NCBI RefSeq assembly: GCF_037042905.1
Contig: NC_087255.1
Location: forward strand, 7,378,001 to 7,442,000
Direction: 5' to 3'
Source: Lytechinus pictus
Taxonomy: Eukaryota
DNA: 64,000 bases
Part shown: positions 4,539 through 51,025 of the stretch, piece by piece
Layout of the letters: each line of letters begins with the position of its first letter
How positions within the stretch are numbered: the stretch's first letter is position 1
Notes under the pieces: model-generated
What the model was told of the DNA's origin: nothing
Database searches by the model: none
Seen by the model: the letters and a program-made list of their open reading frames with translations, nothing else
Translations under genes and position numbers: made by a program

Positions 4539-4599
4539 ATGGATGTGCTTTGTATTCTAATTCTCTCACTGCTCATCCGTGAGGGAAACTTACAATCTG
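4539..4599 (+). CDS. Exon 1: signal peptide [20 protein letters not shown]
   Basis: accATGG start context, hydrophobic core, and a phase-1 donor G|gtaatt matching the phase of the SRCR1 exon. Confidence 0.75.
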
Positions 4600-50200: not shown

Positions 50201-51025
50201 TTCTTCATAAACCAGAAATCTTGGAGATGCACCATATTTTATAAAGGAGGTTTGTCGTGCATAGTTAATTTTCAATTCTTGACACAATCGTAGATTTTAG
50301 TGTGTGAATATTTTCCCAGCTAACCCATGTAAGACTGTGTGGATGGTTCCAATAATATAGGTTTGCATGGGCCATTATGCCAACTACTATATTTTGGTAG
50401 ATTATATCGGTTACCAATCTACGTTTAAATTGGTCTAGGTGATCCCCCATCATTTACTCTTTGGTTACTATTACCTAGACACATTTATTGCATCATAGAA
50501 TTATCAATATGAAGCTCAATACATTATATTGTGAGTGATTTGATTCAAACAAATCTAATTCTCTTCGATCTCTTGCGACCAATCAATATAAAGGGCACAT
50601 CCCTGAGTGGAACTACGGAGCCGTCCGACCAGCCCAGTAAAACCACGAAACTGTCGACTCATCTGAATTACTTGAGAAGGAAACAGAAGGATGTCGGAGA
50701 TGAGAAGAGACCCTTCAGAAGGTCATGCCTCTGTTCAAGACCTGACCACTTCCAAACCAACAGCCTTGGTCTTAAGGTATCCTGTGGCTCGAAGGGTCCC
50801 AAGGTTCCGTATTACATCACCAGAGACAGGGTAGGACTGGGAAGGGACTTCGGTCCTGGAATCGTAGGACGAGTTTGTCATTCTACCTTGATAAGCTCGT
50901 CGTCTGATTGCAAGTCTAACGGCCTACAGAAAGAATCACCTGATGAGATCATCTTAATGTTCAGCAATGACTGTCCGATCACGGTTGACTCAAACGAGGA
51001 ACTGACAGTGGTTTCAGTAGTGTAA
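4539..51025 (+). CDS. Multi-exon gene: signal peptide + 6 SRCR + S/T stalk + adhesion/secretin-class 7TM receptor without GAIN/GPS (~1384 aa). join(4539..4599,5613..5966,9194..9511,24933..25256,39003..39335,40706..41041,41392..41724,44232..44458,46460..46575,47255..47538,48163..48229,48705..49470,49820..50023,50594..51025)
   Basis: Hand-spliced. All introns are GT..AG with compatible phases (1,1,1,1,1,1,1,0,2,1,2,0,0). Total 4155 nt = 1385 codons including the stop, with no internal stop. SRCR and 7TM motifs are recognisable. Confidence 0.85.
5613..5966 (+). CDS. Exon 2: SRCR domain 1
   Basis: tttgaag| ...[37 protein letters not shown]...[12 protein letters not shown]...AAVSCAH |gtaaat; 354 nt, 6 Cys. 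Confidence 0.9.
7108..7256 (+). mobile_element. tRNA-derived SINE
   Basis: A-box tggtctagtgg, B-box ggttcgaatccc, and an aaatgggtacc body shared with other copies. Confidence 0.75.
7395..8097. mobile_element. Tc1/mariner-like non-autonomous element with ~200-bp TIRs
   Basis: (c)agtgcgtatcaaaaa...ttttttgatacgcactg|ta; 7397-7590 mirrors 7900-8097. Confidence 0.75.
8617..8828. mobile_element. Partial Harbinger-like MITE (family of 60469..60734)
   Basis: cag|ggccccgtcttacaaagagttgcgattgatcc shared with 60469. Confidence 0.65.
9194..9511 (+). CDS. Exon 3: SRCR domain 2
   Basis: cgcag| [31 protein letters not shown]...[10 protein letters not shown]...YAGIACDA |gtaagt; 318 nt, 6 Cys. Confidence 0.92.
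9555..9905. mobile_element. Two tandem Harbinger-like MITEs (9555-9737, 9741-9905)
   Basis: tcataaagctg...cagctttatga TIRs; CTG before, between and after the units. Confidence 0.85.
10222..10402 (-). mobile_element. SINE with 7SL/Alu-domain-like head, B-box, gtctttcgga body and (AC)n tail
   Basis: Head GGGCGTTGTGGCGTGCGCCTGTAATCCAAGCTATGCGGG; B-box GGTTCGAGCCC; possible TSD CAGCAT (10216-10221 / 10403-10408). Confidence 0.75.
11146..13068. mobile_element. Harbinger-like non-autonomous element with a triplicated ~500-bp left arm
   Basis: 27-bp TIR agcccctttcacaattgacgtacgacc; TTA/CTA flanks; repeat units start at 11146, 11648 and 12160. Confidence 0.85.
13564..14149. mobile_element. TTAA-targeting (Kolobok-like) MITE
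   Basis: ttaa|aggtcaagtctaccc...gggtggacttgtcct|ttaa; same family as 25438..30388. Confidence 0.85.
15675..16092 (+). mobile_element. Two adjacent tRNA-derived SINEs (~15675-15900 and ~15947-16092) separated by (CAT)n
   Basis: B-boxes ggttcgaatccc and gttcgaattcc; both have the tttggcaa..acccaggtg..aaatgggta body. Confidence 0.75.
16326..20088 (-). mobile_element. L2/CR1-group LINE, near full length (copy 1); EN+RT ORF frameshifted at the 3' end
   Basis: ORF 17408..19762 has LNAQSV/TETWL/GDFN/SDH endonuclease and [14 protein letters not shown] motifs; YADD lies in a shifted frame; (TTA)n tail near 16326-16342. Confidence 0.95.
20118..20391. repeat. ~66-bp direct repeat (20118-20184 and 20326-20391)
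   Basis: cttcgtggtcacgcgtttactgaagaaagtcgctaaacctcgtggttttgcaattaaaccagtctttt occurs twice. Confidence 0.8.
20872..22645 (+). mobile_element. Gypsy/Ty3 LTR-retrotransposon relic: PBS, gag (20914-21827, one frameshift), protease and RT start; 3'-truncated
   Basis: tggtgactccg PBS-like site; VSLKIPPFW / [12 protein letters not shown] / CWYH..HG..A.KC..PC gag motifs; LVDTGA protease; [22 protein letters not shown]. Confidence 0.92.
24933..25256 (+). CDS. Exon 4: SRCR domain 3
   Basis: ttctag| [32 protein letters not shown]...LLCQSVGY...SISCDS |gtaagt; 324 nt, 6 Cys. Confidence 0.92.
25438..30388. mobile_element. TTAA-targeting MITE split by a 4-kb insertion with a 364-bp duplication
   Basis: ttaa|aggtcaagtccatccc ... 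ggggtggactcgtcct|ttaa. Confidence 0.85.
25864..29916. mobile_element. ~4-kb TIR element (cggccgcrggraacgtcac ends) with pyrimidine-rich interior and no transposase seen
   Basis: cggccgcagggaacgtcac at 25864 and gtgacgtttcccgcggccg ending at 29916. Confidence 0.7.
31261..32674 (-). mobile_element. RT C-terminal fragment of a different LINE clade (RTE-X-like, with CCHC finger)
   Basis: [15 protein letters not shown]...[12 protein letters not shown] and [14 protein letters not shown] in ORF 31372..32661. Confidence 0.85.
33758..37149 (+). mobile_element. CR1/L2-group LINE, EN+RT ORF intact except one TGA (35215-35217), nested in copy 2
   Basis: HVNINSL..ITESK..YRPPNS..SDH; [24 protein letters not shown]; AAAT/GAAT tail; TSD AATGGAC (33751-33757 / 37150-37156). 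Confidence 0.95.
39003..39335 (+). CDS. Exon 5: SRCR domain 4
   Basis: ttttcag| ...[45 protein letters not shown]...[13 protein letters not shown]...AAGLTCTS |gttagt; 333 nt. Confidence 0.95.
40706..41041 (+). CDS. Exon 6: SRCR domain 5
   Basis: catcag| ...[28 protein letters not shown]...[10 protein letters not shown]...[13 protein letters not shown]...AAISCET |gtttgt; 336 nt. An in-frame alternative acceptor lies 12 nt downstream. Confidence 0.92.
41392..41724 (+). CDS. Exon 7: SRCR domain 6
   Basis: ctcctag| [49 protein letters not shown]...LDCKG...ASVQCDQ |gtaagt; 333 nt. Confidence 0.95.
42295..42480 (+). mobile_element. tRNA-derived SINE
   Basis: tagcttagtcggtagagc A-box, ggttcgaatccc B-box, and ccctttggtaaggcattaatc body. 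Confidence 0.75.
44232..44458 (+). CDS. Exon 8: Ser/Thr-rich mucin-like stalk
   Basis: attttag| [14 protein letters not shown]...[22 protein letters not shown] |gtaaat. Phase 1 in and phase 0 out, which exactly bridges SRCR6 to the TM1 exon. Confidence 0.8.
44630..45963 (+). mobile_element. 5'-truncated CR1/L2-group LINE with (ATTGA)n tail
   Basis: [24 protein letters not shown], frameshift near 45310, tail at 45938-45963. Confidence 0.92.
46460..46575 (+). CDS. Exon 9: TM1
   Basis: ctttcag| [39 protein letters not shown] |gtaagt. The YIG..C..LTLL.Y pattern is typical of adhesion-GPCR TM1. Confidence 0.9.
47255..47538 (+). CDS. Exon 10: TM2-TM3
   Basis: ccatag| [26 protein letters not shown]...[33 protein letters not shown]...WTQ |gtacag. 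Resembles the class B TM3 pattern C...LHY..L..F.WM..EG..LY. Confidence 0.88.
48163..48229 (+). CDS. Exon 11: TM4 / ECL2
   Basis: ttacag| [23 protein letters not shown] |gtgaga. Contains the class B GxP TM4 motif; phases 1 and 2 fit. Confidence 0.88.
48705..49470 (+). CDS. Exon 12: ECL2 Cys, TM5-TM7 and acidic/Ser-rich tail (read-through of the donor stops at TGA 49491)
   Basis: aacag| [14 protein letters not shown]...SFTFGYL...[23 protein letters not shown] (class B QG..IF..HC motif); phase-0 donor GAG|gtaatt. Confidence 0.92.
49820..50023 (+). CDS. Exon 13: cytoplasmic tail (basic; [12 protein letters not shown])
   Basis: gacacag| ISFTRRGPG...YFLK |gtgagg; 204 nt, phase 0-0, open frame. 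Confidence 0.7.
50594..51025 (+). CDS. Exon 14: terminal exon ([12 protein letters not shown] ... TVVSVV*)
   Basis: ataaag| GTSLSGTT..., in frame with ORF 50531..51025. Repeats the exon-13 motif and ends in S-x-V. Confidence 0.7.
   Translation, partial: GTSLSGTTEPSDQPSKTTKLSTHLNYLRRKQKDVGDEKRPFRRSCLCSRPDHFQTNSLGLKVSCGSKGPKVPYYITRDRVGLGRDFGPGIVGRVCHSTLISSSSDCKSNGLQKESPDEIILMFSNDCPITVDSNEELTVVSVV

Follow-up and report, generated by a model that had tools for sequence, protein, structure and literature searches.

A predicted GAIN-less receptor that combines SRCR domains with a divergent adhesion-class seven-transmembrane domain in Lytechinus pictus

Does an array of SRCR domain exons in Lytechinus pictus continue into the exons of a seven-transmembrane (7TM) domain of the adhesion class within the G protein-coupled receptors (GPCRs), so as to give one receptor in which neither a GAIN domain nor a GPS motif lies between the two parts? 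The question is raised by a stretch of 64,000 nucleotides, referred to here as the window, that matches assembly GCA_037042905.1, CM073236.1:7378001-7442000, base for base; comparison with the locus records L002 and L006 found 0 mismatches over 21.9 kb. Coordinates are window positions unless stated otherwise. A preliminary description of the window, made by reading its letters, had proposed such a gene. The answer that we consider probable is that a single gene, belonging to a recently triplicated L. pictus family, encodes a GAIN-less SRCR-adhesion-type receptor.

Fourteen exons (E1 to E14, Table 1), every one with GT-AG introns and matching phases, join into an open reading frame (ORF) of 4155 nt that encodes 1384 residues and carries a single terminal stop. 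Each of these exons was found at, or adjoining, the position first proposed for it, with canonical AG and GT borders, so that the claim of 14 phase-compatible exons holds. E12 begins not at the start of its ORF but behind a ctaacag acceptor, where the protein reads ..LATD-R-CFFGVW... The order along the joined protein is a signal peptide, six SRCR domains of six cysteines each, a linker of 75 residues rich in serine and threonine (S/T), the 7TM domain, and a tail of ~350 residues; seven hydrophobic helices, encoded by E9 to E12, are present besides the signal peptide. No run of N interrupts any part of the gene, including 41724-46460. The predicted C-terminus, ...VVSVV (51011-51025), ends in S-V-V, which we take to fit the class I PDZ-ligand pattern (S/T-x-hydrophobic) of several vertebrate adhesion GPCRs.

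Each of the six SRCR exons is matched by Pfam model SRCR (PF00530). Four exceed the gathering score when searched as single exons; SRCR1 and SRCR6 were searched as cut ORFs and score below the curated cut-off. With four SRCR domains joined, as in RefSeq models, the match reaches 1.2e-63 over four stretches. Domain match and conserved cysteine pattern, with six cysteines per exon, place the array in the SRCR superfamily, and the array provides the long adhesion or recognition ectodomain by which adhesion GPCRs are known, with four SRCR domains in the RefSeq models and six in the 14-exon model. The count of six given in the preliminary description is right for the exons, all of which have the Pfam match and the cysteines, but only E4 to E7 are joined in RefSeq models. 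The proposed membership of E1 to E3, and with it a total of six rather than four domains, is based on phase and strand, together with a signal peptide that the protein would need. Upstream of E4 (1-24900), no exon other than E1 is a strong candidate for one with a methionine, a hydrophobic stretch and a phase-1 donor. A weaker exon of this kind, with donor gtgttt, lies at 8692-8770, ~420 nt upstream of E3, and is a possible alternative first exon.

The 75 residues of E8 include 25 S/T residues, four prolines and no cysteine, with three N-x-S/T sites around the junction. The "mucin stalk" of the preliminary description is therefore not the right term, as the stretch is a short S/T-rich linker with no mucin repeat. 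Orthologues of the SRCR6 exon in other species (P0007 and P0008) share 61-64% identity with it. At one other-species locus (L005), the next exon, ~330 nt downstream of SRCR6, also opens an S/T-rich, cysteine-free stretch, and on an ENA contig from another species the SRCR ORFs are followed, after SRCR6, by ORFs of 247, 148 and 85 residues, the first of which has no Pfam match.

From the last cysteine of SRCR6 to the first transmembrane helix (TM1) there are ~93 residues, none of them cysteine. A GAIN domain takes up ~320 residues, and a GPS motif ~40 residues with conserved cysteines and tryptophan (PMC3321182). The length and composition of the intervening segment therefore allow no GAIN domain, no GPS motif and no autoproteolytic split. 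A regular-expression search for the GPS-like pattern C.C..H[LMIVF][STC] found no instance in any forward frame from 4 to 52 kb. Among all 40 forward-strand ORFs of at least 30 residues between E7 and E9, none matched Pfam GPS (PF01825) or GAIN at E<=1, and the only real Pfam match was RVT_1, from a long interspersed nuclear element (LINE) in intron 8; the stalk-plus-TM1 part of a RefSeq model likewise had no Pfam match. Intron 8 had been described as mostly a LINE with no room for a GAIN domain; it does contain a LINE reverse-transcriptase fragment, at 44565-45353. In one of the two paralogues described below, copy B, intron 8 measures 666 nt, with 13-18 stops in each frame, and lacks a block of 1329 nt found in the window. 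Given so short an intron 8 in copy B, the LINE block must have inserted into the window copy, and no larger coding stretch was ever present there.

Before TM1, E9 encodes a hydrophobic segment, SEICILL, whose place may correspond to that of the tethered agonist, or Stachel, of adhesion GPCRs. Its hydrophobic pattern resembles TNFAVLM, but by our own count its distance from the end of TM1 is ~11 residues shorter. Searched alone against PDB, E9 returned nothing useful, and stalk plus TM1 scored 0.66 in ESM Atlas, which is at noise level. Just upstream of E9, at 46223-46324, RNA reads and contigs show opposite-strand joints between ~46231 and 46319-46323, which suggest that a small repeat of palindromic or foldback type, transcribed from other parts of the genome, is present here.

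To which receptor class do the seven helices belong? Two separate exons match structures of adhesion GPCRs at the appropriate helices. A single-sequence search of PDB with TM5-7 (E12) found ADGRL3 at 6.6e-5 and also ADGRL2, with the glucagon receptor at only E ~0.8-1, while TM2-3 (E10) found ADGRG4 best at 0.024, followed by ADGRG2, ADGRG5 and ADGRG6, aligned at the TM2-3 position. A TM5-7 profile was built from the window, copy B and the only distant relative, P0001. It raised ADGRL3 to 3.2e-7, with ADGRL2 at 1e-4, ADGRE5 at 5e-3 and ADGRD1 at 0.1; adhesion GPCRs filled the seven best places, after which came noise from LeuT and, below it, ADGRD1 and ADGRE1, and no secretin receptor appeared at E<=1. 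No Pfam match to the HRM domain that would mark class B1 was found. By language-model features in ESM Atlas, TM5-7 falls in 7tm_2 clusters (score 0.92, 178 shared features). The cysteine pair of TM3 and extracellular loop 2 (ECL2) is present, as is the TM7 motif QG.IF..LHC....VRKE, and relative to ADGRL3 the toggle tryptophan is replaced by phenylalanine and a TM3 glutamate by histidine. P0001 lies on a Logan DNA contig of 1.5 kb that shows no upstream exons; its locus (L001) keeps the position and phase of the E12 acceptor and the TM5-7 motifs. Word-index searches returned nothing for E10 and only the RefSeq tail protein, LOC129271431 (P0002), for E12. Judged by its sequence, the 7TM is an adhesion-class (B2-like) domain, as had been proposed, and a divergent one.

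A profile search for the RefSeq model led to XP_054764696.1, whose 90% cluster holds XP_063962644.1, XP_063962647.1 and XP_063962661.1, all from this chromosome. They mark three copies of the gene: copy C (L004) at 6966664-6998761 of CM073236.1, copy B (L003) at 7110993-7147119, and the window copy. Both paralogues carry E4 to E14 at 95-100% identity, with every AG and GT kept and the frame open to the same stop. In copy C, an in-frame deletion of 135 nt (45 codons) removes part of the linker exon E8 (L004:21553-21684, at ~6.988 Mb of CM073236.1), and RefSeq omits E8 there; the linker is free to vary in length. Homology among the copies ends ~530 nt past the stop codon; upstream it continues beyond the border of L003, the equivalent of window position 12865.

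The three copies also show whether these exons behave as coding sequence. Between the window and copy B, the 6262 aligned intron nt contain 34 insertion or deletion (indel) events; the 3422 exon nt contain none, where 18.6 would be expected (P ~1e-8). For E9 to E14 alone, 6.3 indels were expected against copy B and 5.6 against copy C, and none was observed (P 0.002 and 0.004). Substitutions between the window and copy B number 44 nonsynonymous (N) to 33 synonymous (S), where neutral change would give 0.77 as the N fraction (P ~7e-5), and the ratio of nonsynonymous to synonymous rates (dN/dS) is ~0.4, and 0.25-0.66 in the 7TM, the latter from very few changes. With no frame-breaking indel in the exons and with these substitution counts, the 7TM and tail exons behave as coding sequence.

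How RefSeq treats the three copies bears on whether the exons form one gene. For the window copy, XP_063962661.1 (P0011, 541 residues) starts at a methionine at 23432, with no signal peptide, runs through E4 to E8 and from there passes, in the wrong frame, to the acceptor of E11 (..NRSFNR|VCQPQ*). For copy B, XP_063962647.1 (P0010, 588 residues) joins E8 to E9 (..NNRSLNR|NMSEICIL..) and then E9 to E11 out of frame. For copy C, XP_063962644.1 (P0009) leads from E7 into a repeat and ends in an ORF from repeat sequence equivalent to window 46102-46230, which adjoins the foldback repeat upstream of E9. The tail is annotated separately as LOC129271431 (318 residues), which begins at an internal methionine of E12, continues through E13 and E14, and falls wholly inside residues 1067-1384 of our model. 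Between them, automated models contain the junctions from E4 to E8, E8 to E9, and E12 to E13 to E14. The weak E10 acceptor (tggttaccatag) is immediately preceded by a (TAG)n microsatellite at 47200-47226, which may explain why gene callers omit E10.

RNA was checked over 41540-47539 in three runs of contigs that share words with SRCR5-6 and E12, and in one run of raw reads (1.9 Gb). All RNA reads on this segment fall on repeats derived from transposable elements (TEs), and runs that share 5-16% of the words of E12 or SRCR5-6 do not document junctions. At 42340-42540 in intron 7, and again at 43340-43540, RNA contig depth rises to a summed word depth of ~34,000, with ~20x in raw reads; the ends of these reads run into unrelated sequence, and the source is a repeat that is transcribed in abundance. 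Introns 7 and 8, scanned with Rfam and for tRNA genes to explain this depth, gave no match.

Several of these results weigh against a single gene. RefSeq divides the locus between two products, a "neurotrypsin-like" SRCR protein and a tail protein left uncharacterized, and E1 to E3 appear in none of its models that we saw. Exon E10 and the junctions E9 to E10, E10 to E11 and E11 to E12 are likewise in no RefSeq model seen, both SRCR models omit E10 (and, in the window copy, E9) and reach E11 in the wrong frame, and the E10 acceptor is poor. The E8 to E9 junction in XP_063962647.1 gives weak support, because the ends of such models may be ab initio. An in-frame ATG at 46463 in E9 could start a 7TM-only protein. 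RNA depth is zero on the 3' end of E7 and on E8, E9 and E10 in all four runs, which is absence of evidence only. A Pfam 7tm_2 scan of the single 7TM exons gave no match, and an exhaustive TM5-7 search of 1.8 billion representative proteins returned P0001, at 48% identity, as the single relative at E<0.001. The paralogues are so alike that, for the 7TM by itself, the substitutions (5 N : 6 S, P 0.03) point only marginally to constraint. The junction of 44458 with 46460, on which the preliminary description turned, thus remains a prediction: RefSeq uses it in copy B, but no read of the four RNA runs does. The same division applies to the interpretation as a whole, whose architecture is upheld in silico, with the exons open in two paralogues, but whose single transcript lacks RNA support at a locus that RefSeq splits.

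Could the locus then hold two transcription units, a secreted SRCR-plus-linker protein that ends after E8 by read-through or alternative splicing, and an orphan class-B 7TM protein that starts at the ATG in E9? The separate RefSeq genes for the SRCR part and the tail agree with this, an older RefSeq model (P0003) does end by read-through just after E8 (...NRVNNIM*), the E9 ATG has an A at -3, and no read connects E8 with E9. On this view the phases of E8 and E9 match by accident or as a relic of evolution; the probability of a chance match at both E7 to E8 and E8 to E9 is, however, ~1 in 9. The textbook acceptor of E9 (ctttcctttcag) fits an internal exon, RefSeq itself connects E8 with E9 in copy B, and in all three duplicates the SRCR and 7TM exons stay together, in a single unit that ends 3' of E14. 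Nor are the RefSeq SRCR models good evidence, as they have no signal peptide and finish out of frame. We regard two transcription units as unlikely.

A second alternative takes the 7TM to be a silent relic, the decaying remainder of an adhesion GPCR that lost its GAIN exons, with only SRCR products made, if any, and with frames still open because the duplicates are young. In its favor are the zero RNA depth on E8 to E10 and the many TEs in the introns. With a divergence between copies of only 1-3%, few disabling changes are expected; the 7TM is very divergent, as the toggle and TM3 replacements illustrate, and no RefSeq model reads it in frame. Against decay, neither a stop nor a frameshift occurs over 1140 codons in three copies, the exons show no indel against copy B, where 18.6 were expected, and E9 to E14 none against either copy, dN/dS stays at ~0.25-0.66, and the 48%-identical relative retains the TM5-7 motifs and the exon boundary. 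Such a relic seems to us distinctly improbable. That real GAIN exons are merely missing from or misplaced in the assembly is scarcely credible and close to refuted, as we found no point in its favor, the interval 41724-46460 has no N run, the order E7-E8-E9 is the same in three independent copies (one with the 666-nt intron 8), and the window does not differ from the chromosome-level record.

Table 1. Exons of the proposed receptor gene and associated features in the window, with the evidence for each.
Feature	Position	Strand	Evidence
E1: start codon and signal peptide, phase 0 to 1	4539-4599	+	read directly; donor G|gtaatt
E2: SRCR1, phase 1-1, 6 Cys	5613-5966	+	Pfam SRCR partial, below curated cut-off; link to E4 onwards unconfirmed
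E3: SRCR2, phase 1-1, 6 Cys	9194-9511	+	Pfam SRCR 1e-11; link to E4 onwards unconfirmed
E4: SRCR3, phase 1-1, 6 Cys	24933-25256	+	Pfam SRCR 1.8e-10; in XP_063962661.1; kept in both paralogues
E5: SRCR4, phase 1-1, 6 Cys	39003-39335	+	Pfam SRCR 5e-20; in XP_063962661.1; kept in both paralogues
E6: SRCR5, phase 1-1, 6 Cys	40706-41041	+	Pfam SRCR 9e-14; in XP_063962661.1; kept in both paralogues
E7: SRCR6, phase 1-1, 6 Cys	41392-41724	+	Pfam SRCR partial, below curated cut-off; in XP_063962661.1
E8: 75-residue Cys-free S/T-rich linker, phase 1 to 0	44232-44458	+	in XP_063962661.1 and XP_063962647.1; no Pfam match
E9: hydrophobic pre-TM1 segment and TM1, phase 0 to 2	46460-46575	+	strong acceptor ctttcctttcag, donor CG|gtaagt
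E10: TM2-TM3, phase 2 to 1	47255-47538	+	PDB ADGRG4 0.024; 99-100% identical in paralogues; weak acceptor
E11: TM4, phase 1 to 2	48163-48229	+	read directly; acceptor used out of frame by both RefSeq models
E12: ECL2 Cys, TM5-TM7, tail start, phase 2 to 0	48705-49470	+	PDB ADGRL3; donor confirmed by LOC129271431 model (P0002)
E13: tail	49820-50023	+	exon of RefSeq LOC129271431 (P0002)
E14: tail end, ...VVSVV then stop	50594-51025	+	exon of P0002
LINE reverse-transcriptase fragment in intron 8, outside the gene product	44565-45353	+	Pfam RVT_1 6e-16
RefSeq start exon without signal peptide	23432-23486	+	XP_063962661.1 sequence and L006 coordinates; probably annotation artefact

Other features of the window lie in the long introns or outside the gene. 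Intron 3 contains, at 19861-21827 (+), a RefSeq protein of 259 residues with DUF7041 that looks like a retrotransposon gag, followed by a protease- or reverse transcriptase (RT)-like ORF at 21704-22660. Long LINE ORFs, identified from motifs by eye, lie at 33703-36576 (+) in intron 4 and at 17408-19762 (-) in intron 3, one of them endonuclease-like plus RT and one an RT of 784 residues; this LINE family sits at other places and in other orientations in the paralogues. Downstream on the opposite strand, at 58001-59257 (-), RefSeq annotates a gene for a protein of 418 residues with a weak zf-B_box match (TRIM-like).

If all exons are spliced into one mRNA, the product would be a receptor of predicted type I orientation, in which a signal peptide is followed by four to six SRCR domains, a short and flexible linker open to O-glycosylation, a B2-like 7TM and a long cytoplasmic tail. 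Binding of a ligand by the SRCR array could then be relayed to the 7TM with no N-terminal fragment being shed, either via the linker or via the hydrophobic SEICILL segment. By analogy with other SRCR proteins, the ligands may be microbial or matrix polyanions; that microbe binding is coupled to G proteins, as the preliminary description suggested, is pure conjecture. A bolder proposal, which we think quite doubtful, is that the lineage-specific, recently amplified family gave up the GAIN domain and keeps SEICILL as a Stachel-like remnant, permanently unshielded below the SRCR array, so that ligand binding would gate G-protein signalling directly, with neither cleavage nor shedding, in an undescribed kind of innate-immune GPCR.

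How far is such a receptor new? Adhesion GPCRs with SRCR domains have been reported from amphioxus (PMC2246102) and from a sponge, Amphimedon (PMC4302439). Few domains accompany SRCR more often than 7tm_2 does in the starfish Acanthaster, in which Apl018 has the order SRCR-HYR-GPS-7tm_2 (PMC10855680, Table 1 and supplement). All of these receptors resemble the L. pictus gene in having SRCR repeats in the ectodomain of a family-B2 7TM, and Apl018, from Acanthaster planci, comes from an echinoderm as well. Apl018, however, has a Pfam GPS match (961-1004) directly before its 7TM, where the L. pictus gene has only the 75-residue Cys-free linker and neither GPS nor GAIN. Human ADGRA1 (GPR123), like the L. 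pictus gene, has an adhesion-class 7TM without GAIN (PMC11697300), but it has almost no ectodomain and many of its homologs elsewhere keep GAIN, whereas the L. pictus gene keeps a large SRCR ectodomain. Nor is there a specific kinship of sequence with ADGRA1, as the best PDB matches of the L. pictus 7TM are ADGRL3, ADGRL2 and ADGRE5. The closest solved 7TM is that of the latrophilin ADGRL3 (PDB 8vti and 7wy5), with which TM5-TM7 align over ~125 residues, including QG.F.F.HC...VRKE in TM7. The similarity is nevertheless low (34 bits with the profile), several conserved residues are changed in L. pictus, and ADGRL3 has lectin, olfactomedin, HormR and GAIN domains. With the echinoid SRCR multigene family the gene shares tandem SRCR domains of six cysteines, each on a single phase 1-1 exon, and RefSeq files E4 to E8 there, under names such as neurotrypsin-like, DMBT1-like and SRCR superfamily protein-like. 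Typical members of that family are secreted or single-pass proteins, whereas the L. pictus gene continues into seven helices.

Because SRCR-adhesion GPCRs with a GPS and the GAIN-less ADGRA1 were already known, the new element is the combination of a large SRCR ectodomain with the lack of GAIN and GPS, and the novelty is smaller than the preliminary description implied. New in the present analysis are the two paralogues, the recognition of the LINE as an insertion specific to the window copy, and the coding constraint of the exons. On this reading, three L. pictus loci need another annotation than the present one of RefSeq, which combines the names "neurotrypsin-like" or "SRCR superfamily protein-like" with a separate uncharacterized tail gene, and they provide an example of divergent 7TM exons missed by homology-guided gene callers. 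If true, it would link the greatly expanded SRCR repertoire of echinoids to heterotrimeric G-protein signalling, and the fusion transcript would be a natural experiment on whether adhesion GPCRs need GAIN and cleavage to signal.

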